From Octopus sinensis (lineage: Eukaryota): a stretch of DNA of 22,291 nucleotides. Location of the stretch: the NCBI RefSeq assembly GCF_006345805.1, contig NW_021836917.1:1-22291 (forward strand), written 5' to 3'. The translations under genes and the position numbers were made by a program. Shown piece by piece: positions 1,604 to 20,977 of the stretch. Under the pieces are notes generated by a model. It was not told the origin of the DNA. It made no database searches and saw only the letters and a list, made by a program, of their open reading frames with translations. Within the stretch, counting starts at the first letter, position 1; the number at the start of each line of letters is the position of its first letter.

Positions 1604-1865
1604 ATGGAGGACGTCGAGTTAGAAGTACAGACCATGTACCCAGGCTTCGTGCACCACTTGAACTCCACAAGCATGCAACAGAAGTCCAACGTGCTGACGG
1701 CAAGGTTGCCGTTTGTTGGTAGGGTGCGTCTGCTCACCGACTGTGTGGGCCTGCTCAAGTGCTGTTTTGTCGTGATCTGCTACGTGTATGCCGTGTTCGT
1801 CTCTCTGGTAGTTATCGTGCAACCCCAGTATGACGACGACAACATGTCGGCCCCTTTTGCAGTCC
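1604..1865 (+). CDS. ZDHHC21: ZDHHC21-like palmitoyltransferase, coding exon 1 (N-terminus + TM1)
   Basis: ATG at 1604 (tccATGG). Reads MEDVELEVQTMYPGFVHHLNSTSMQQKSNVLTARLPFVGRVRLLTDCVGLLKCCFVVICYVYAVFVSLVVIVQPQYDDDNMSAPFAV, then C|GTGAGT donor at 1866 (phase 1). GRVRLLTDCVG...QPQYDDDNM aligns by eye with human ZDHHC21 GLRIHFVVDPHG...FPHYEEGHI. Candidate acceptors tacAG 1460-61 or tgcAG 1476-77. The true start codon is less certain than the exon. Confidence 0.85.
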
Positions 1866-3250: not shown

Positions 3251-5293
3251 GCAGAAGGCGTATAAGAGCGAAGAGAGAAGATTAATTCCTGTTCACGGCG
3301 CAAACGGGAATCCGGATGGCCTCTGTGTAAGGACAAACCGAACACAGATAGGTGTTGCAAGGAGTGACCGGTGGAGCGGAAATGGCGTGAGACCGGTGTG
3401 TCGTTCGCAAGGTGGATGTCACGAAGGTGTTCCGCGAACCGGTCAGCCAAGCGGCGTCCCGTTGTCCGATGTACAAGAATTGCAGAGAGAGCAAGAGATG
3501 CAATAGATAATATTGCTGGAGGTGCAGGTGAAGGAGTGGATGATGGGATAGGGTCGATGGTGGGGTGCTAGTGAGGCGGGTGGTGTTGGAGAGGTAAGGG
3601 CAAGTGCGGCAACGTGGGCGGGAGCAGGGGAACGAGCTGGGTTGGGAGGTAGGGTCAGGGAAGGAGCTATGGACCAAAAGGTCTCGAAGGTTTTGGGCTC
3701 GTTTGAAAGAGGGGAGGGGTCGGTTAGGGAAGAGGTGTGAAGTGGACAGGTCGGACTGGAGATGACGGAAAGCTCGAAGAATGGTGCGTTGGAGACGTAG
3801 GGTCGTGGGGTGGTAAGTGAGGGGAAAGGGAGGCGGGAGACTACAGGGCGGGTTCGGGAGAGAGAGCAGATACACGGTCCACGGACCGTGCTCTGGCAAG
3901 GGCGGTGTGGATAGTGGTGAGGGGGTATCCACGTAGGGTGAAGTGGTGAGCCATACGTTGAGACTGAGTCTCAAAGTCATGGTCGTCACTACAGAGCCTA
4001 CGTAGACGGAGGAATTGGGAATAGGGGATGGAAAGCTTGGTGTGTTCTGGGTGGGAGGAAGAGAAGTTGAGGTATGAGTGTGAGTCTGTGTGTTTGTAGT
4101 GAATGGAGGTGGTAAGAGTGGAGTGAAGAATGCTAACCGAAATGTCGAGGAAGGAGACAGAGGTGTTGGAGATAGTGGAAGTGAAGTGGAGGGCTGGATG
4201 GAAAGATTGGACGAAAGAGAGGAAGGAATCTAGATGTTCGCGGGAGAGTGAGGGCACCGATAATGTCGTCAATATAACGACCATATAGTTCAGGAGTGGG
4301 ACCAGTGAAATTAGAGAATATTTGGGCTCAACATAGCCAACGAACAGGTTCGCATAGTTGGGGCCCATTCGCGTTCCCATGGCCACTCCCGAGACCTGAT
4401 GGTAGAACTCGCCCGCGAACGAGAAGCAGTTCAGAGTAAGGACAAGTTCGGCCAGACGAATGAGTGTGGAGGTGTCAGGTACAGGGTTAGAGCGGAGGTC
4501 AAGAAAGTGTCGAAGGGCCTGCAGTCCTTCGTGGTGAGGATAACAGTATAGAGGCTTTGGATGTCCATAGTAAAAAGGATTTTGGAGGAGCCGGGAGGAA
4601 AGGAGAAAGAGTTGAAAAGCCGGAGAGCATGGTTGGTATCGTGGATGTGGGAGGGAAGAGATGCCACTAGGGGGGCAAGGACACGGTCGAGGTATAGAGA
4701 TGAGCTCCGTGGGGCAGTTACAGGCGAGACGATGGGGCGGCCAGGGTTGTTGGGTTTGTGGATTTTGGGGAGGAAGTAAATGGTGGGGGTACGTGGGGTT
4801 CGCACAATTAGGTTGGATGCGGTGCGGGGAGACGGGAGGACGAGATGAGGTCTTGGACAGTAGAGGATACCGTCTGTTGGTAGCTACGTGTGGGGTTAGA
4901 GGGCAGAGGGGAATAGAAGGAGATATATATATATATATATATTTATCAAAAGAAAAAACTGGATGCAAAAGATTTTGCAGTACGTATGTTTCTGGCTTTA
5001 TTGAGCAATTTATATCAATGCATAATTGAAATAACATGTAGGTCAACAGCCTTCTTTAGCCGCGTACAATTACCACACCAAAGACATGTATTACATTATA
5101 GCAGATTTGAGAAGTTTGGGAAAAAAATGAGTTTCATTGGGAAGGTAAATCCTCATAGTCGTATGTGGCATAGCGAGACACCAAAATAAAACGTCTATAT
5201 ATATATATATATATATACATACATACATGTATGTATACATGTATGTATACATGTATGTATACATGTATGTATATATGTATGTATATATGTATG

Positions 5294-5637
5294 TCATCAT
5301 CATCGTTTAACGTCCGTTTTCCGCGCTAGATGGGTTGGACGGTTCGACCGGGGTCTGTGAAGCCAGGGGCTGCTCCAGGCTCCAGTCTGATCTGGCAGAG
5401 TTTCTACGGCTGGATGCCCTTCCTAACGCCAACCACTCCGCGAGTGTAGTGGGTGCATTTTACGTGCCACCTGCACAGGTGCCAGGGGGGGGTTCGGCAT
5501 CGGTCACGATCGGTTGGAGCTTTTAACGTGCCAGCGGCACTGGAGCCAGCCAAGGCAGTGCTGGCAACGTTCGGATGGTCTTTTTATGTGCCACCGGCAC
5601 AGGAGCCAGTCGGGGCGGCGCTGGCATCGGCCACGCT
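5294..5637 (-). mobile_element. SINE-like repeat, family 3 (RTE-like 3' tail ending (GAT)n)
   Basis: Reverse complement of the GAAGGGCATCCAGCTGTAGAAAC...AACGGACGTTAAACGATGATGAT tail also seen at 15170-15310, 16760-16913, 17975-18108 and 18521-18660. Confidence 0.75.
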
Positions 5638-7397: not shown

Positions 7398-7502
7398 TTT
7401 ATACATACCTGTGCTTCAATATGTTTCTCTCTTTGATAATGTCCATTATTACCAACCCTGGCCAACTCTACCTCACGCAGGCTCTGGAACCTCTACTCTC
7501 AG
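7398..7502 (+). CDS. ZDHHC21: ZDHHC21-like exon 2 (TM2 + DPG-equivalent NPG motif)
   Basis: Pyrimidine tract + ttccAG acceptor and G|GTAACA donor; 105 bp, phase 1 to phase 1. Reads (L)YTYLCFNMFLSLIMSIITNPGQLYLTQALEPLLS(D); SIITNPG corresponds to ASITDPG of ZDHHC21. Confidence 0.88.
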
Positions 7503-8247: not shown

Positions 8248-8333
8248 CCATGATTGTACCATGTAAAGCAAGCGGACATCTACATATCAACATATATATA
8301 TATATACATATCAACATATATATACATATCAAC

Positions 8334-8382
<49 letters not shown>

Positions 8383-8388
8383 TATATA

Positions 8389-8787
8389 CTCTTTTACTTG
8401 TTTCAGTCATTTGACTGCAGCCATGCTGGAGCACCACCTTTAGTCGAGCAAATCGACCCCAGGACTTATTCTTTGTAAGCCTAGTACTTATTCTATCGGT
8501 CTCTTTTGCCGAACCGTTAAGTTACGGGGACATGAACACACCAGCATCTGTTGTCAAGCGATGTTGGGAGGGCAAACACAGACACACAAACACACACGCA
8601 CATACATATATATATACATATATTCGACGAGCTTCTTTCAGTTTCCGTCTACCAAATCCACTGACAAGGCTTTGGTCGGCCCGAGGCTATAGTAGAAGAC
8701 ACTTGCCCAAGGTGTCACGCAGTGGGACTGAACTTGGAACCATGTGGTTGGTAAGCAAGCTACTTACCACACAGCCACTCCTGCACC
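8389..8787 (-). mobile_element. Family 1 SINE, full length
   Basis: Reverse complement of 388-783. Confidence 0.85.
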
Positions 8788-8822
8788 TATATATCTAAAT
8801 ATATATATATATATATAAATTC

Positions 8823-9870
8823 TATAATTATGAGTATAAATATAATTAGGGTTCAGCAAATTGCTTCACCACATACCGAAATTTAGAAATAGCAGTTAAA
8901 TACTATTCCTCTACCATAAGATATCTCCCAGACAGCAAGACTCTGTGTTTCTGGATTAAAGGGATTGTAGTGTGAACGGTGAAAAGAGTACAACAGAAAA
9001 AGGGAGAATGGAAATGTAATTGGGTCTTACCTCGTTGGAGATGAACTTGGATCGCTTTTAGCCAACTCGCTCGTCTGGTCCCTTCGTCGTGTCCACCGCA
9101 ACTCGTCAATGCCACACGTGCATTCTGCCTGTCACTTCCGCTTCCTCCGGCGCATGCGCCCTGCAAGCCCCACTTCCGCTCTCCCCCATCCGTCACATCT
9201 GGGATGTAAAATTTTTATTTTTATCAACCAAGCGACATCGAATAGCTATTCGATGCCGCTTGGTCGAATATGTATTTAATTATTAGTACTCTAAAACTTA
9301 CAATTGAAATACTACACTGAAGACGGAAATAAGTGAGTAAAAACAAAAATTTTACATCACTTTAATCCAGAAACGTGTATGTGGTTGATCAAAGCTGGGT
9401 GGATTCATTATTCTTTTCCCTTTACCTACGTGAATTAAGAGTCTTGCTGTCTGGGGGATATTTTATGGTAGTAGTGGAATAGTATTTAACTGCTATTTCT
9501 AAATTTCGGTATGTGGTGAAGCAATTTGCTGAACCCTAATTATAATTTAAGCTTATAATTATGAACTACTTGGTAAAATTATTATTAATTAATTGATTAA
9601 TTTTTACCCTTTATTATTATTTAAAGGATATGAAACTGACTTATTGGAAGTCCACCTGAAGATTGTCGATCAAGACAAGAAACGATTGTAGTGGCGGTTT
9701 TTTTGACTATTTATTAAAATTTTATGTATTGATTAAGTCTTTCCTTGTTTGTTTTGCAAAATAGTGGTTTTGTCCTAATAATATTTTATAATATTTTACT
9801 ATAAAATTGGATTAATCCTAAATCTGATTTTTTCCCTGTAAATTTGGATTTATTCCCTAATATTTATTAT
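8823..9870. mobile_element. Inverted pair of Penelope-like pseudo-LTR fragments with a GC-rich core
   Basis: 8841-8909 is the exact reverse complement of 9476-9544 (69 bp; ~120 bp with mismatches). A hammerhead follows at 9652-9694, and 10495-10575 is another inverted copy of 9400-9480. PLE identity is inferred from the hammerhead and inverted layout; no ORF was recognised. Confidence 0.55.
9652..9694 (+). ncRNA. Minimal type I hammerhead ribozyme motif, sense to the host pre-mRNA
   Basis: CCAC-CTGAAGA-TTGTC-GATCAA-GACAA-GAAAC-GATT-GTA-GTGG: 4-bp stem I, 5-bp stem II, 2-bp stem III, GUA triplet, full catalytic core. Confidence 0.75.
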
Positions 9871-9874
9871 TATT

Positions 9875-10144
9875 ATATATATATATATATTATATATATA
9901 TATATATATTTAGATACACACACACACATATACACATATACTAACATATACATATATACATATATATATACATATATATTAACATACATATATATATACA
10001 ACACATAGATATATAATATATATATATATTATATATACACACACACCATATACACATTTATAAATACATATACATATATTCACATATATATATATACATT
10101 ATATATACATATATATATATATATATAATATATATATATATATG

Positions 10145-10187
<43 letters not shown>

Positions 10188-10444
10188 CATACATATACCT
10201 ACATACAATATATATATTATATATATATATATATATATAGATATACATACATATATACTACATATATACATAAATATATATATATACATAATATTATACA
10301 TACCTATATATACATACATATATACATACATATATATATATACCTAATATATACATATATAATATATATATATATATACATACATATATACATACATATA
10401 TACATACATATTACATACATATATATACATACATATATACATAC

Positions 10445-10495
<51 letters not shown>
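9875..10495. repeat. Long (TA)n/(TACA)n compound microsatellite
   Basis: Directly visible; source of the spurious YI-repeat ORFs. Confidence 0.92.
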
Positions 10496-10496
<1 letters not shown>

Positions 10497-10744
10497 TCCA
10501 ATACTACCATAAATTCCCCCAGACGCAAGACTCTTAATTCACGTAGGTAAAGGGAAAAGAATAATGAATCCACCCGTCCTTGTTTTCTTTGTATCGTCTG
10601 TCTGAACGTTTTGTTGACCCTTTTTTGTACCACCTGACTGTCTGGATGTTTTGCGTTCTTGTACCGTTTTTGTATTTTTCATATATTAAAAATATAGTGG
10701 CGTACGTAATTTGTCTCTTATCTGTAAGTATATATATATATATG

Positions 10745-11146: not shown

Positions 11147-11995
11147 TGAGGGGCGTTCAATAAGTAATGCCCCTGACCCACTTCCTATAGCAGTAGAGCA
11201 ACGAAACTTGGCACAGTTATTAGTCTTTTTCTACATAGGAACCACCCAGAGTTACGCATTTCTCCCATCGTTTGATGCAGCTCTGGAGACCGTTTTTATA
11301 GAAGACCCCAGCTTGGTCCTCCAACCACGACGTGACTACAGAAATCAAGGCTTCATCATCTGGGAAACACTTTTGAAAAAGGTTGACTCATCTTCTTGGC
11401 ACATCTCCAAATTCATCCTCGAGCACTCGACGCGTTCTTGCTTCTGGAAAGGTGTGAGCAACCTCGGAATCCATCTGGGAGACACCTTTTGCATATGCAA
11501 ATGGTCATGAATGATAGTTTCCAAAGACCCAGTACTAATCTTGACCTCATGGTCTATTTGACGAATAGTTATGCGTCGATCTTCCAAAATGGCAGCCTCA
11601 ACTTGACGGACAGATACCTCATCAATGGCAGAAGGGGGGGCGACCAGATCTGGGAGCTGTTTCCACAGAGTTCCGACCGTGTTTGAATTCACGATGCCAG
11701 CGTTTTACAAGGTCATATGATGGGGCATCATCACCATAAGTTACTTTCATTTCATCAAAAGTCTCCCGTGGTGTGCGTCCTTTCAAATACAAAAACCGGA
11801 TCACTACTCGACACTCAACAGGCTCCATTTCACACTTGACTCAGTTCAAACACATGTAAATCAGAAACCACAATTAGTTCAGAGCTGTAATTTGCCACCT
11901 AATCTATAGAGATATAAGTAATTGCACATGCAAAATTTCAGCTAGATCAAACAACTGCAAGTGGGTCAGGGGCATTACTTATTGAACGTTCCTCG
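11147..11995 (-). mobile_element. Internally deleted Tc1/mariner (mariner-type) DNA transposon
   Basis: 37-bp TIRs (GAGGGGCGTTCAATAAGTAATGCCCCTGACCCACTT..., 3 mismatches) and TA duplications at 11145-46 and 11996-97. The minus strand encodes the HTH region (MEPVECRVVIRFLYLKG...RSGRP; RWIPRLL) and the C-terminus (FYKNGLQSCIKRWEKCVTLGGSYVEKD*); the catalytic DDD domain is absent. Confidence 0.9.
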
Positions 11996-14399: not shown

Positions 14400-14550
14400 T
14401 TTTCCTGAGTTCAAATTCCACCGAGGCTGATGTCACCTTTCATCCTTTCGGGGTCGATTAAATAAATACCAGTTATGCACTGGGCTTGATGTAATTGACT
14501 TAACATCCCCCCCCCCCCCAAGTTGCCCTTGTGGCAAAAATTTGAAATCA
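13750..14550 (+). mobile_element. Cluster of family 2 SINE copies and fragments upstream of exon 3
   Basis: GAGTTCAAATTC...CTTTCATCCTTT core repeated at ~13800, ~13985, ~14215 and ~14405. Confidence 0.75.
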
Positions 14551-14580
14551 TTATTATCATAATTTTAAACTTTATTACAG

Positions 14581-14692
14581 ACACCACCAGTAAGTCATAC
14601 TGTAAAACATGCCACATGCATCGTCCACCTCGGTCATTCCACTGCAGCCACTGTGGTCACTGTGTACGGCGAATGGATTTCCATTACAGTTG
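14581..14692 (+). CDS. ZDHHC21: ZDHHC21-like exon 3 (cysteine-rich domain; DHHC motif present as DFHY)
   Basis: tttattacAG acceptor and TG|GTGAGT donor; 112 bp, phase 1 to phase 2. Reads (D)[36 protein letters not shown](W), versus ZDHHC21 [32 protein letters not shown]. Too short to appear in the ORF track. Confidence 0.93.
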
Positions 14693-14739
14693 GTGAGTAT
14701 TGTTTATGAAATACTTTTTGAAACCTTTATTATTATCAC

Positions 14740-15310
14740 TCCGTGCCGGTGACACGTAAAAAGCACCATCCATTCGTGGCCGTTGCCAGTCTCGCTAGGC
14801 CCCTGTGCCGGTGGCACATAAAAAGCACCATCCGTTCGTGGCCGTTACCAGTCTTGCCTGGCCCCCGTGCCGGTGGCACGTAAAAAGCACCGTCCGTTCG
14901 TGGCTGTTGCCAGCGCTGCCCCGACTGGCCTCCATGCCGGTGACACGTAAAAAGCACCATCCGTTCGTGGCCGTTGCCAGTCTCGCCAGGCCCCCGTGCC
15001 GGTGGCACGTAAAGAGCACCATCCGTTCGTGGCTGTTGCCAGCGCCGCCCCGACTGGTCTCCGTGCCAGTGGCACGTAAAAATACCATCCGTTCATGGCC
15101 GTTTGCCAGCTCCGTCTGGCTCCTGTGCGGGTGGCACGTAAAAAGCACCCACTACACTCGCGGAGTGGTTGGCGTTAGGAAGGGCATCCAGCTGTAGAAA
15201 CACTGCCAGATCAGACTGGGCCTGATGCAGCCTTCTGGCTTCCCAGACCCCAGTTGAGCCGTCCAACCCATGCTAGCATGGAAAACGGTCGCTAAATGAT
15301 GATGATGATT
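14740..15310 (+). mobile_element. Family 3 element with an internal 62/67-bp minisatellite (7 unit starts)
   Basis: GTGCCGGTGGCACGTAAAAAGCACC units start at 14743, 14805, 14867, 14934, 14996, 15063 and 15125, followed by the family 3 tail ending (GAT)n. Confidence 0.8.
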
Positions 15311-16387: not shown

Positions 16388-16525
16388 GCTGAACAACGTG
16401 TCGGTGAGGATAATCACCACATCTTCCTCCTGACAATTATATACACCCTGTTTTTCTGCATCACTACGCTCATTTTGACTGTTCTACATTTCTACTATTA
16501 TCCCAAATGTATAACCTGTGATAAG
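16388..16525 (+). CDS. ZDHHC21: ZDHHC21-like exon 4 (end of CRD + TM3), with an apparent 1-bp deletion at ~16397/16398
   Basis: aaacAG acceptor and AAG|GTATGT donor. G CTG AAC AAC GT GTC GGT GAG GAT AAT CAC gives (W)LNN-x-VGEDNHHIFLLTIIYTLFFCITTLILTVLHFYYYPKCITCDK, versus ZDHHC21 WINNCVGEDNHWLFL...CHYYYFLP. The exon is 138 bp; 139 bp are needed to link phase 2 to phase 0. Confidence 0.88.
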
Positions 16526-16554
16526 GTATGTATAAATTTTATATAAATCGAAAT

Positions 16555-16913
16555 CGAATTGAACCAGCCAGGATCCCTGGTCTGGTGGTACGTAAAAAGC
16601 ACTATCCGACTCATGGCCGATGCCAGCGCCACCTCGACTGGCTTCCGTGCCGGTGGCACATAAAATACACCAATCTGACCGTGGCCGTTGCCAGCCCCGC
16701 CTGGCACCTGTGCAGGTGGCACGTAAAAAGCACCCACTACACTCACGGAGTGGTTGGCGTTAGGAAGGGCATCCAGCTGTAGAAACATTGCCAAATTAGA
16801 CTGGAGCCTGGTGCAGCCTTCTGGCTTCCCAGAACCCCGGTCGAACCGTCCAACCCATGCTAGCATGGAGAACGGACGTTAAACGACGATGATGATGATG
16901 ATGATGATGATGA
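16555..16913 (+). mobile_element. Family 3 element
   Basis: Minisatellite-like units plus the tail ending (GAT)n; begins ~30 bp after the exon-4 donor. Confidence 0.78.
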
Positions 16914-16915
16914 TA

Positions 16916-17120
16916 TGAAGGGAGTGCTGAAAACTTCCTGGCTTTAAGGGTATCACAAAAGGCCTGGTTGTAGACCCAACCTTCTGAATTCTTTTACATT
17001 GCTTAGCAAAACTGAAGGACCACTGCAATAAGTGTGTAAATCACGGATAAAATCATAATTAACTGATCCTCCTGTAATTTCTTCTACCCAAAGCTAGGAA
17101 CCTTTCAGCACTTCTTTGTG
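16916..17120. mobile_element. Mariner-like MITE, decayed
   Basis: Imperfect ~30-bp TIRs (GGGAGTGCTGAAAACTTCCTGGCTTT / AAAGCTAGGAACCTTTCAGCAC) with TA on both sides. Confidence 0.55.
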
Positions 17121-17143
17121 TATGTATATGTGTATATATAAAT

Positions 17144-17530
17144 AATTAATTGTTATCACCATATTAATATGGCAGTCTTATAGATATAAGACTAAAAGCT
17201 GTCGCTGATTAGCTCCATGAGGCCATCGCCTTAAGATAGCTATTTGACACACAAACTGTGTCCATTACAACCTTCGAACAAGGGAGGTCAGCCGCTTCAC
17301 ACTGCCAGTCAGACAGCTACAGACGCTTTTCAGGGTATTTGCCCTTTGTCAATGTAGCGTAGTCGACCCAGCAGGTGTCGCCACTGATCGTCTCTGTTCG
17401 AAGGTTTTATTTACCTAGTTTCGGTGTCAAATAGCTATCTTAAGGCGATGGCCTCATGGAGCTAATCAGCGACAGCTTTTAGTCTTATATCTATAAGACT
17501 GCCATATTAATATGGCGATAACAATTAATT
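17144..17530. repeat. Fold-back element with 107-bp inverted arms
   Basis: 17144-17250 and 17424-17530 are reverse complements at 106 of 107 positions; a further 12-bp pair at 17269-17280/17395-17406 lies in almost the same register. Confidence 0.9.
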
Positions 17531-17809
17531 TCCAGTAACGCTGCCGTAATCTCTTTTAGAGAGACTTAGTTATTTTAATATTTCTATATATAAATAGATA
17601 TATTAATATATTTAGCTATAGGGTATGAGAGGTATTGGTGTCAAGAAGACCCTAAAAGTGTCCGGTAATGCTAAGTAAGTGCAAAGGATATATGGATAGA
17701 CCATGATTAAGCTCCAGGTTTGATAAAGATACGAGTGAGGTGTCCAATGTGGGTCATGTATTAGCATGTATATATATACTTAGTGCTTAAGGAGACCTAT
17801 TGAGTCAAG

Positions 17810-18108
17810 TACATGAACATCGAAATAAATATCAATGGAAATAGTAGTTGTGATACCTGTGCCGGTGGCACATAATAAGCACCATCCAAACGTGGCCGTT
17901 GCCAGCGCCACCTTGACTAGCTTCTGTGCCGGTGGCACATAAAAAGCACCCACTACACTCGCGGATTGGTTGGCGTTAGGAAGGGCATCCAGCTGTAGAA
18001 ACACTGCCAGATGAGACAGGAGCCTGGTGCAGCCCCTGGCTTCCCAGACCCCGGTCGAACCGTCCAACCCGTGCTAGCGCGGAAAACGGACGTTAAACGA
18101 TGATGATG
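17810..18108 (+). mobile_element. Family 3 element
   Basis: Same unit and (GAT)n tail as the other copies. Confidence 0.75.
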
Positions 18109-18117
18109 AACAAGTCC

Positions 18118-18280
18118 TGAGTTTTCAGAACATTTATAAAGCAAAAGTCTTACAGTTGTTTCCGTGATATTTTATATATCCCTTCATCAGAGACAGTGTG
18201 AGTATATCTCATGAAGGGATATATAAAATATCCTGGAAACAACTGTAAGACTTTTGCTTTATAAATGTTCTGAAAACTCA
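18118..18280. repeat. 70-bp inverted duplication of a hammerhead-bearing pseudo-LTR fragment
   Basis: 18118-18187 pairs with 18211-18280 (2 mismatches) around a 23-nt loop. Confidence 0.85.
18147..18194 (-). ncRNA. Type I hammerhead ribozyme motif
   Basis: Minus strand GTCT-CTGATGA-A-GGGATAT-ATAAA-ATATCAC-G-GAAAC-AACT-GTA-AGAC: stem I GTCT/AGAC, intact core, GUA triplet, one mismatch in stem II. Confidence 0.65.
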
Positions 18281-18328
18281 TTACAGCCTTGGATTTTTTA
18301 TTTCATTCTGTCAGCTTATATATATATA

Positions 18329-18660
18329 CTCTCTTACTCTTTTACTTGTTTCAGTCATTTGACTGTGGCCATGCTGGAGCACCACCTTTAGTCGAGCTAT
18401 TCAACCCCAGGACTTGTTCTTTGTAAGCCTAGCACTTCTATCGGTCTCTTTTGCCGAACCGCTAAGTTATGGGGACGTAAACACACCAGCATCGGTTGTC
18501 AAGCGATATTGGGGTTAGGGTTAGGAAGGGCATCCAGCTGTAGAAACTCTGCCAGATCAAGATTGGAGCCTGGTGCAACCATCTGGTTCGCCAGTCCTCA
18601 GTCAAATCGTCCAACCCATGCTAGCATGGAAAGCGGACGTTAAACAATGATGATGATGAT
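18329..18660. mobile_element. Family 1 SINE tail (minus, 18329-18514) fused to a family 3 tail (plus, 18521-18660)
   Basis: Both segments match the other copies in the window. Confidence 0.75.
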
Positions 18661-18735
18661 ATTATAAATTTTATTGGTAAAATACTTTTCTGGGAACGAA
18701 TTACAATTTGTAACATTGCTACTATGGGTACTATA

Positions 18736-18900
18736 GGCGCAGGAGTGGCTGTGTGGTAAGTAGCTCGCTTACCAACCACATGGTTCCGGGTTCAGTCCCA
18801 CTGTGTGGCATCTTGGGCAAGTGTCTTCTGCTATAGCCTCGGGCCGACCGAAGCCTTGTGAGTGCATTTGGTAGACGGAAACTGAAAGAAGCCTGTCGTA

Positions 18901-18945
<45 letters not shown>

Positions 18946-19166
18946 TTGTGTTTGTGTGTCTGTGTTTGTCCCCCTAGCATTGCTTGACGACCGATGCTGG
19001 TGTGTTTATGTCCCCGTTACTTAGCGGTTCGGCAAAAAGAGACCGATAGAATAAGTACTGGGCTTACAAAAGAATAAGTCTCGGGGTCGAGTTGCTCGAC
19101 TAAAGGCGGTGCTCCAGCATGGCTGCAGTCAAATGACTGAAACAAGTAAAAGAGAGAGTAAAGAGA
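18736..19166 (+). mobile_element. Family 1 SINE, full length
   Basis: GGCGCAGGAGTGGCTGTGTGG head through the (GTAAAAGA)-type tail. Confidence 0.87.
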
Positions 19167-19315
19167 GGTAATTACTGCTCTGTTTTATGATTTTTCCCTT
19201 TATGAGCGGTCTCTGGGAGCAAATTAATTAATGTATGTAGGCACTACTGTATATATCTGTTGAAAAAATCTCTATTTCACATTCATTATAATGTTGTTAA
19301 TTTATCTCTTCCCAG

Positions 19316-19432
19316 CAAATATTTTACATAAAACACAGTATCTGGTTTATATACACCCTAAACGTCATCTTGATCTACGGCCTGTTCCAATCCCTCATCA
19401 TGTTCGTCGTACAACATCTAAACATAATTATG
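19316..19432 (+). CDS. ZDHHC21: ZDHHC21-like exon 5 (TM4)
   Basis: ctcttcccAG acceptor and ATG|GTGAGT donor; 117 bp, phase 0 to phase 0. Reads QIFYIKHSIWFIYTLNVILIYGLFQSLIMFVVQHLNIIM, resembling ZDHHC21 LFVFRHEL...FYTQLIGIIT. Confidence 0.88.
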
Positions 19433-19552
19433 GTGAGTAGACAACCTTCTTCTATCATACGATTTGGGTTTGTCCTTTATCGATAGTTAAATGGTCAAGC
19501 AGTGGGTGGGTCACTTTTTGCTCGTGGGTGACAAGGTAATATTATTTTTTTT

Positions 19553-20050
19553 TTTTACTTGTTTCAGTCATTTTGACTGCGGCCATGCTGGAGCACCGCC
19601 TTTAATCGGGCAACTCGATCCCGGGACTTATTCTTTGTAAGCCCAGTACTTAGTCTATCGGTCTCTTTTGCCGAAACTGCCTAATTGACCGGCACGGCAC
19701 GTAACACCACACAGACACACACAACACAACAAAATGTTTAGTATACACAATGGGCTAGTCGCGTGCCGCTCCAACATCGACCAAGACACACACAACACAC
19801 CCAAGACCACAGTGGGATAACAACTGTGGTTACATACAAGCTACTACACATCACAGTCCACGCCTAATTTAGGTTCTATACTGATCACTTCGAACCGGAG
19901 TGAGACGCAACATTCCGCGTGTTATGCGAAAAGGAAGTCATTAAGGATCGACCCGGGGTATAGCAGAAGACACTTTTTGCCCAAGCATTCAGACCCACGC
20001 AAGCCTTCTCACTCTCCGGACTTGTACCCGGACCGACGTTTTGCCATGGG
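19553..20050 (-). mobile_element. Family 1 SINE with a recognisable tail (19553-19680) and a scrambled remainder
   Basis: The tail is clear. GGGGTATAGCAGAAGACACTTTT.GCCCAAG at ~19955-19985 is a corrupted head segment. Confidence 0.55.
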
Positions 20051-20565
20051 AGTGGTACGGAACATTCGTTCGAGCATACTTGACTGGCACCCTGAGAACA
20101 AGGATCACAGGACCCTCCTACGCCTATATTATATTCCGTTGTTTGGATCCTCTGACTGGAAGCCTTGTCATTGTAACCGACGGAGTGTCATGGCTGAGTG
20201 GTCGGGATATTCAGTTCAGGCTGTGTTATGCTGAATCTCCCTGAGAACTTCATTAAGGATACATGTCTGTGGAGTACTCAGCCACTTGCATGTTGATATC
20301 AGGAGCAAGCTATTCCAGTGATCGGATCGACTGGAAGCCTTGTCATTGTAACCAATGAAACGTCAATCTCGTTATCACTTTATCTTTTGACCTTCTCTGT
20401 CGGCATAGCTTGAAACGTATCGACAGGGGCCTAATGATTACCGTGGACAGCATCATACTTTTCCTTTGACATATCTCTCTCTCTCTCTGTTTTTGGCTTG
20501 GTTCCATTCTCCAGCTGGACCCCCCCCCAACCTTTTCTAACATCATACAGGAAGGAGTATATCAC

Positions 20566-20825
20566 CATAAGAGAGTTGCTGAAGCGTGGAACAAACTGCC
20601 GGCATCGGTTGTTAGTTGTCGGAGCACTGCATCCTTCAAAACTTCCATGCTTCCTGAGATTTGCCAACACTACACCTGATTTTCTCCCCTCCATACACGC
20701 ACAAGCATGTTCACTTTCCAGACATTTCTACATTACTGCATGTACTTTATATGCACTTTCTGACAAGTTGTGGTGCACCTGAGCACTGTATACAATAATT
20801 TCATTATTATATTATTATTATTATA
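20566..20825 (+). mobile_element. CR1-like LINE 3' end
   Basis: 20566-20679 encodes HKRVAEAWNKLPASVVSCRSTASFKTSMLPEICQHYT*, the RV..WN.LP..VV...S...FK C-terminus typical of CR1-group ORF2, followed by a 3' UTR and (ATT)n tail. Confidence 0.72.
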
Positions 20826-20933
20826 ATCACCCATAAATGAAGAGTGTCTCCATCCCCTGGCATAGAATCCCCACATGACTGGTTAAATTTTGTGCATGCT
20901 TATAATGCCTTTTGTCTTTTGTTCTTTTTCCAG

Positions 20934-20977
20934 AACCGAACGACTGTGGAGAATGTATTATTAACACCTGTCGTTGA
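20934..20977 (+). CDS. ZDHHC21: ZDHHC21-like exon 6 (TTxE motif); gene continues beyond the window
   Basis: Long pyrimidine tract + ttccAG acceptor and GA|GTGAGT donor; 44 bp. Reads NRTTVENVLLTPVV(E/D), containing the family TTxE motif right after TM4. No stop codon or C-terminal exon found in the window. Confidence 0.85.

Follow-up and report, generated by a model that had tools for sequence, protein, structure and literature searches.

The question raised by this locus is whether a palmitoyltransferase gene that has lost its catalytic residues may still be kept as a working protein, and if so, as what. The stretch analysed, called the window throughout, is the whole of VCDQ01006003.1, an unplaced contig (22,291 bp) in assembly GCA_006345805.1 of Octopus sinensis. 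As read from the sequence, exons 1-6 of the octopus gene orthologous to the S-acyltransferase ZDHHC21 lie on its plus strand. We consider it probable that the octopus ZDHHC21 is a Cys-less orthologue kept by selection, most likely a pseudoenzyme with a non-catalytic role. The two altered boxes from which this interpretation starts are the following.

14676-14687, plus strand: D-F-H-Y (GAT TTC CAT TAC), where the family has D-H-H-C.
14634-14645, plus strand: S-F-H-C (TCA TTC CAC TGC), where the family has (S/A)-H-H-C.

In the DFHY box the catalytic His has become Phe and the catalytic Cys has become Tyr, with the Asp and the zinc-binding His retained, and a Ser (AGT) stands at the Pro position of DHHCPW. 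The SFHC box retains its zinc-binding His and Cys, and the preceding His has become Phe (H142F) at a position where His is 100% conserved in 49 non-octopus ZDHHC21-family relatives. Among the 139 ZDHHC21-family proteins with a recognisable cysteine-rich domain (CRD) that were collected for the analysis, the box reads DHHC in 136 and DFHY in three Octopus proteins only; in other words, octopus DFHY and SFHC stand against DHHC in 136/136 and (S/A)HHC in 134/136 of the non-octopus relatives. The O. bimaculoides genome has the same four DFHY codons, and the Cys nucleophile and His general base of a competent zDHHC S-acyltransferase are missing from the window and from both other Octopus species (O. 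vulgaris and O. bimaculoides). Each of the His to Phe changes, in both boxes, takes two nucleotide changes (CAY to TTC), and such two-step changes hint at selection for aromatic packing rather than drift.

The zinc-binding framework around these substitutions is largely preserved. All seven zinc ligands of exon 3 are present (CxxC, H-C-xx-C-xx-C and the second His of the DHHC box), so that seven of the eight ligands are encoded in the window, the codon of the eighth (Cys164 of N-N-C) being struck by a 1-nt deletion that is treated below; the O. vulgaris and O. bimaculoides proteins have all eight. One hydrophobic helix each in exons 1, 2, 4 and 5 gives four transmembrane (TM) segments, and apart from the shift in exon 4 there are zero in-frame stops in the six exons. 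An earlier note on this DNA, made from its letters, had reported the D-F-H-Y codons, the S-F-H-C upstream, the Ser for Pro, the seven zinc ligands of exon 3 and the retention of four TM segments, NPG, TTxE and the splice sites. All of these observations were confirmed, with NPG lying in 7398-7502, TTVE in 20934-20977 and canonical splice sites at 11 of 11 positions across the six exons.

The affiliation of the gene is seen from several searches. The spliced conceptual protein, with an X at the shift, matches the Pfam DHHC family (PF01529) with E = 1.9e-26 and 93.1 bits against a cut-off of 28.7, and it matches the human DHHC20 (hDHHC20) sequence with E = 1e-16. An exhaustive HMMER search queried with P0001, the partial NCBI protein model of this contig, recovered a close cluster of O. 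vulgaris CAI9743222.1 (345 aa, full length), CAI9743221.1 (268 aa) and O. bimaculoides XP_014788632.1 (250 aa), all three of which have SFHC and DFHY, an intact frame and eight zinc ligands. When the spliced conceptual peptide was run in a word-indexed protein search, only the contig's own model was matched. Next in closeness (28-38% identity) come canonical proteins of the ZDHHC21 or ZDHHC21-like kind, found in gastropods, bivalves, a chiton, echinoderms, hemichordates, amphioxus and vertebrates, and every named top match is ZDHHC21 or ZDHHC21-like and not another zDHHC subfamily. Judging from these top matches and from the subfamily motifs NNCVGEDNH, PxCxxCDK and WxxPCRR, the octopus gene belongs to the ZDHHC21 orthogroup. 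Further matches of the exhaustive search (P0009-P0021) were considered as cephalopod relatives or degenerate boxes and rejected, as they are canonical proteins of other phyla or fragments of genomic open reading frames (ORFs).

With the ZDHHC21 and ZDHHC21-like proteins of vertebrates, molluscs, echinoderms and amphioxus the octopus protein shares the length class, the four TM helices, N/DPG after TM2, CxxC...HCxxCxxC...NNCVGEDNH, PxCxxCDK after TM3, NRTTxE after TM4 and the WxxPC(R/K)R tail. Besides the two boxes, it differs from them at the C-terminus, where the octopus proteins have a Thr/Ala-rich low-complexity tail and the relatives a short conserved end (...H-x-V). This tail spans residues ~298-345 of O. 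vulgaris CAI9743222.1 and ~203-250 of O. bimaculoides XP_014788632.1, and it belongs to the last exon, which lies off the window. Two isoforms of the gene are annotated in O. vulgaris; the annotation of that species gains isoforms only through PASA transcript updates, and hence the two isoforms are an indirect sign of transcription. The O. bimaculoides protein XP_014788632.1 begins inside exon 2 and is devoid of TM1 because exon 1 falls in an assembly gap, the position of exon 1 being a 997-nt run of N (8768-9764 of the locus that we call L002, CM046628.1). The RefSeq model of O. bimaculoides is therefore N-terminally truncated owing to this gap.

We compared the window with the O. bimaculoides locus over exons 2-6 (170 codons) and found 14 synonymous and 8 non-synonymous differences, corresponding to a synonymous divergence (dS) of 0.139, a non-synonymous divergence (dN) of 0.020 and a dN/dS of 0.146 (Fisher p = 1.5e-5; bootstrap interval 0.05-0.34). 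The dN is about five times lower than the divergence of alignable intron sequence between the same two loci (0.098 over 3,515 nt), and the coding comparison (518 nt) contains one indel, as against 245 gap columns for the intron alignments (~3,500 nt). Exon 3 shows a single difference in 112 nt, which is synonymous. The reported split times are ~34 million years (My) for O. sinensis and O. bimaculoides and ~2.5 My for O. sinensis and O. vulgaris (PMC10700109). As DFHY is common to O. sinensis and O. bimaculoides, it predates the ~34-My split, and on these numbers the octopus Cys-less ZDHHC21 has evidently been under purifying selection since then. Such selection, in spite of the lost catalytic residues, makes a pseudoenzyme the most likely interpretation, and at the level of the genus this interpretation appears well supported. 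The points on which the earlier note had looked to other octopuses agree with it: DFHY is the same in the independent O. vulgaris and O. bimaculoides assemblies, with no DHHC there, dN/dS is far from 1 and the ORFs of the other species carry no disabling lesions.

The octopus protein has nonetheless changed at more than its catalytic positions, which departs from the earlier claim that the loss is confined to them. In an alignment of 49 non-octopus ZDHHC21-family proteins, 39 columns are conserved at >= 90%, and the octopus sequence is altered at 10 of these (W60Y, W127K, H142F, R146H, H156F, C158Y, P159S, I161L, L176T and G275K). The 29 retained columns include the eight zinc ligands, the Asp, W160, NN, VGE, N169, F173, the TT of TTxE and W282/P285. 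Keeping all 8 zinc columns and losing both catalytic ones has a hypergeometric p of 0.007, calculated post hoc, and the loss thus appears to be enriched at the active site, not confined there. The octopus branch also seems to be accelerated: the octopus protein is 34-36% identical to those of other molluscs, which are 50-54% identical among themselves, and in Tajima relative-rate tests the octopus-specific changes are 1.3-2 times more numerous, with mixed significance (p 0.01 to 0.56) and hence as a trend only.

The gene model behind these comparisons consists of six exons in the window.

1604-1865, plus strand: exon 1, with the ATG at 1604; residues 1-87 plus one base; TM1; donor C/GTGAGT.
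7398-7502, plus strand: exon 2, with TM2 and the NPG motif (LYTYLCFNMFLSLIMSIITNPGQLYLTQALEPLLS); starts and ends in phase 1.
14581-14692, plus strand: exon 3, the core of the CRD with seven zinc ligands; acceptor ttacAG; donor TG/GTGAGT; phase 2 at its end.
16388-16525, plus strand: exon 4, with LNN[C]VGEDNH and TM3; 138 nt long, one fewer than the 139 nt of O. bimaculoides.
19316-19432, plus strand: exon 5, with TM4 (QIFYIKHSIWFIYTLNVILIYGLFQSLIMFVVQHLNIIM).
20934-20977, plus strand: exon 6, NRTTVENVLLTPVV, with NRTTVEN and the TTxE motif (TTVE); donor GA/GTGAGT.

Exon 1 is identical (100% in tblastn) to residues 1-87 of O. vulgaris CAI9743222.1, the O. bimaculoides counterpart of exon 2 begins at 9978 of its locus, and the coding frame of exon 3 is read from 14583. 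Since exon 6 ends in a good donor, the gene runs on and its 3' end lies off the contig; in O. bimaculoides the final exon is found 45 kb farther downstream (L002 61581-61835). At 7400-7408 the window encodes a Tyr (YTYLCF) in place of the Ser of O. vulgaris and O. bimaculoides (YTSLCF, YISLCF), and a Val at 19361-19363 (LNVILIYG) where both have Ile (LNIILIYG).

The reading frame of this model is interrupted in exon 4, and three features describe the interruption and its consequences.

Between 16397 and 16398, plus strand: missing base, AACAAC^GTGTC here and AACAACTGTGTC in O. bimaculoides, by pairwise alignment.
16431-16433, plus strand: premature TGA in the spliced DFHY frame; the exon 4 donor follows 92 nt later.
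14609-14692 and 16388-20975, plus strand: NCBI model P0001, 'probable palmitoyltransferase ZDHHC21, partial', starting at an internal ATG at 14609.

At the N-N-C codon O. bimaculoides has AACAACTGTGTCGGTGAG and the window AACAAC-GTGTCGGTGAG, so that exon 4 as assembled starts G CTG AAC AAC GTG TCG GTG AGG, with VGEDNH in another frame. The earlier note had implied an intact frame that included VGEDNH, which does not hold for this contig. The ORF is broken here and intact in O. vulgaris and O. bimaculoides, and a scan by eye for a frame-rescuing acceptor or donor found no AG or GT in the needed phase near 16388 or 14692. P0001 reads exon 3 in the wrong frame (MPHASSTSVIPLQPLWSLCTANGFPLQL), and its first 28 residues are not genuine ZDHHC21 sequence; its start is an annotation work-around for the frameshift and not a real coding frame. 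The public O. sinensis model for this contig is thus mis-framed and needs correction.

How far the frameshift and the altered boxes might be accounted for without a selected pseudoenzyme can be judged from the same data. That DFHY is itself a sequencing or assembly artefact, with DHHC in the true gene, is hardly credible: the window is a small unplaced contig with at least one suspect indel, yet the identical five nucleotide differences from a DHHC-coding sequence occur in three species whose assemblies are independent and come from separate projects of different groups. An old unitary pseudogene, decaying across octopuses, in which DFHY was merely the first of many disabling mutations, would agree with the loss of both catalytic residues and 8 other family-conserved residues, with the accelerated branch and with the frameshift of this contig. 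It is nevertheless very improbable given the low dN/dS and the dN five times under intron divergence across ~34 My, the O. vulgaris (345 residues) and O. bimaculoides (250 residues) proteins free from stops and frameshifts, the retention of the eight zinc ligands and of every splice site, and the scarcity of coding indels compared with intron gaps; the signs of decay (dN/dS ~1, several lesions, lost splice sites) are not seen, and there is one lesion, in one assembly. A more serious contender is that the frameshift is real and that a gene already Cys-less was newly pseudogenised by a 1-nt deletion in O. sinensis, or in one haplotype of it, while remaining functional in O. vulgaris and O. bimaculoides. 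The deletion is present in the assembled sequence and lies outside any homopolymer, two amino-acid changes (S91Y and I223V) are private to the window compared with both other species, and P0001, which is partial and sidesteps the frameshift, is the one protein model that was found for O. sinensis, no full-length member from this species being in the 90% cluster. Set against this, O. vulgaris, separated from O. sinensis by only ~2.5 My, has an intact gene, long-term constraint on the gene has been strong, no second lesion accompanies the first, every splice site is intact, and indels can plausibly persist in a 22-kb contig that is unplaced and comes from a long-read assembly with only 86% of its bases placed and 5.2% of its BUSCOs duplicated (PMC10700109). 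We accordingly regard a recent pseudogenisation as rather unlikely, and the deletion as fairly likely to be an uncorrected assembly error of an unplaced long-read contig, because the gene is constrained and intact in the sister species, the lesion is single and the contig is small and unplaced.

A different explanation would leave the protein an enzyme under certain conditions. A-to-I (adenosine-to-inosine) RNA editing is pervasive in coleoid cephalopods, and editing at A14686 would recode TAC (Tyr) to TGC (Cys), turning DFHY into DFHC in part of the transcripts. Tyr to Cys is the single catalytic reversion that can be reached by one A-to-G change, and the A in question has a 5' U, a context favoured by ADAR. 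Moreover, nucleotide conservation is unusually high in exon 3 and the adjoining intron sequence: positions 14510-14736, which comprise exon 3, ~70 nt of upstream and 44 nt of downstream intron, are 98.2% identical to L002 12199-12425, with 3 differences in 227 nt against a background of 9.8% (binomial 2e-7), and other alignable intron sequence is ~90% identical between O. sinensis and O. bimaculoides. This suggests that the exon 3 region is under extra constraint at the nucleotide level, for example from splicing control, RNA structure or editing, and such constraint has been reported around cephalopod editing sites. However, the conservation of the flanks is equally explicable by splicing signals, no stable local structure is predicted (pre-mRNA fold z = -0.40, spliced mRNA z = -1.2, pairing probability of the candidate A 0.17), and the change of the catalytic His to Phe (TTC) is not revertible by editing. 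Literature searches yielded no editing data, no paper that deals with octopus ZDHHC21 and none that describes an edited palmitoyltransferase. A conditional enzyme of this kind therefore seems improbable, less so than an old pseudogene and far more so than a recent frameshift.

The pseudoenzyme interpretation itself is in line with the predicted fold. An AlphaFold2 (AF2) model of the O. vulgaris protein (predicted local distance difference test, pLDDT, 80.8; predicted template modelling score, pTM, 0.77) has four long helices, at 47-77, 83-105, 170-196 and 214-244, and CRD hairpins, the CRD being placed in the TM2-TM3 loop. Its best matches in the Protein Data Bank (PDB) are hDHHC20 (Foldseek TM-score 0.64, E = 1.4e-9), ZDHHC9, Erf2 and ZDHHC5, and PDB 7KHM, the Cys-less human mutant hDHHS20, is among the best matches by both sequence and structure. 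The model is consistent with a retained DHHC-family fold, although as evidence it is weak.

We propose the following mechanism. The protein of the genus Octopus is predicted to keep the DHHC-family architecture, with four TM helices, a cytosolic CRD and both CCHC zinc sites. Its sequence also retains the DHHC-box Asp, the NNCVGEDNH and TTxE motifs and, at the tail, WxxPC(K/R)R. With the catalytic His and the acyl-accepting Cys replaced (DHHC to DFHY), as well as the invariant first His of the upstream HHC box (SFHC), it would possess neither the thiol nucleophile nor the general base, and the canonical two-step cycle of auto-acylation and transfer would be unavailable to it, judging from DHHC20 and from what is known of DHHS mutants. 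The zinc-folded membrane protein may instead bind clients, acyl-CoA or other zDHHC enzymes and act as a scaffold, adaptor or regulator, a role that is plausible by its likeness to ZDHHC13 and iRhoms.

Natural and engineered relatives of this arrangement are known. Yeast Akr1, Akr2 and Pfa5 (DHYC) are natural variants of the DHHC tetrapeptide. Unlike the octopus protein, they are active and keep the catalytic His and Cys, their change being in the zinc-binding His that octopus retains. The iRhoms and other membrane pseudoenzymes are polytopic homologues of enzymes that have lost their catalytic residues, are under selection and serve as client-binding regulators, but the iRhom fold and chemistry are unrelated to those of the octopus protein and the likeness is one of analogy only. 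Engineered DHHS and DHHA mutants offer another comparison, as the Cys-less hDHHS20 (PDB 7KHM) folds, retains its zinc sites and binds palmitoyl-CoA; these are laboratory constructs with a single substitution, whereas the octopus variant is natural and apparently selected, and is devoid of the general base as well. ZDHHC13 (DQHC), too, is a natural zDHHC; its catalytic box is non-canonical, its orthologues are accelerated and divergent, and it has been proposed to be a scaffold that works through other palmitoyltransferases (bioRxiv 10.64898/2026.04.20.719575). It belongs to another subfamily, however, with ankyrin repeats and six TM helices, and the human protein keeps the Cys, which is itself S-acylated, while the octopus ZDHHC21 has no ankyrin domain and has lost both His and Cys to bulky aromatics. 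The statement in the earlier note that known natural variants keep the Cys is outdated, since vertebrate ZDHHC13 orthologues have Ser at this position and ZDHHC13 has been called a likely pseudoenzyme (bioRxiv 10.64898/2026.04.20.719575).

Several points weigh against a selected pseudoenzyme. The deletion in the window removes one base of the N-N-C Cys codon, that is, of the eighth zinc ligand (Cys164), and the contig as assembled would yield a truncated product of 174 residues, the premature stop being expected to trigger nonsense-mediated decay. The dN/dS is based on 22 substitutions in one species pair, and the AF2 alignment (51 sequences) is dominated by canonical homologues and cannot establish the folding of the mutant site. 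Among the matches listed there is no DHHC-intact octopus paralogue, which is weak as proof of absence, and no other cephalopod orthologue beyond Octopus, which bounds the age of DFHY only at >= ~34 My. The scaffold, adaptor or regulator mechanism is an analogy only. The proposal of the earlier note, a folded non-catalytic protein rather than random decay, accordingly stands for the genus, with DFHY and SFHC, intact ORFs, eight zinc ligands and dN/dS 0.146, and does not stand for the frameshifted copy of this contig.

A bolder version of the pseudoenzyme interpretation is that octopuses have turned their only ZDHHC21 orthologue, with no DHHC-intact copy left, into a non-catalytic membrane protein with a selected new function, for instance as a regulator or substrate adaptor of other zDHHCs. 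We put this forward tentatively, as a possibility with the odds against it, and A-to-I editing of TAC to TGC that conditionally restores the acyl-accepting cysteine is a possible twist on it. If the octopus protein is indeed a natural member of the family that has neither the Cys nor the general base but has its zinc ligands and has been under purifying selection, then the DHHC fold would have a selectable non-catalytic function, an idea only now raised, for ZDHHC13. The octopus protein would be a cleaner test case than ZDHHC13, having no residual cysteine and no ankyrin domain, and with canonical mollusc orthologues available for swaps. What is new here is a probable DHHC pseudoenzyme of the ZDHHC21 subfamily without both His and Cys; the DHHC-family pseudoenzyme as a kind has already been proposed.

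The introns of the window contain several other features. Directly after exon 3, at 14721-15149, starts a tandem array of 62-67-nt units with CCGTGCCGGTGGCACGTAAAAAGCACC. Related copies occur near 5294-5587, 16576-16900 and 17856-18116, and dispersed copies match many sites in the O. bimaculoides locus; the array is probably a repeat family derived from a short interspersed element (SINE). On the minus strand of intron 1, at 3285-5055, lie two long ORFs (404 and 315 aa) with a guanine-plus-cytosine (GC) content of 0.50-0.58 and a strong GC skew, which are retroelement-like; these ORFs have no Pfam match at E <= 0.01, and where the O. bimaculoides locus can be aligned it has nothing that corresponds to the insertion. 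Intron 2 contains, on the minus strand at 11223-11840, what is left of a mariner/Mos1-type transposase (Pfam HTH_48, E = 6e-10), with adjoining ORF fragments broken across frames. Long microsatellites of TA/TAC type, which read YIYIYI in several frames, and CA-rich tracts are also present in the introns, at 9800-10550, 8260-8400 and 1200-1450.

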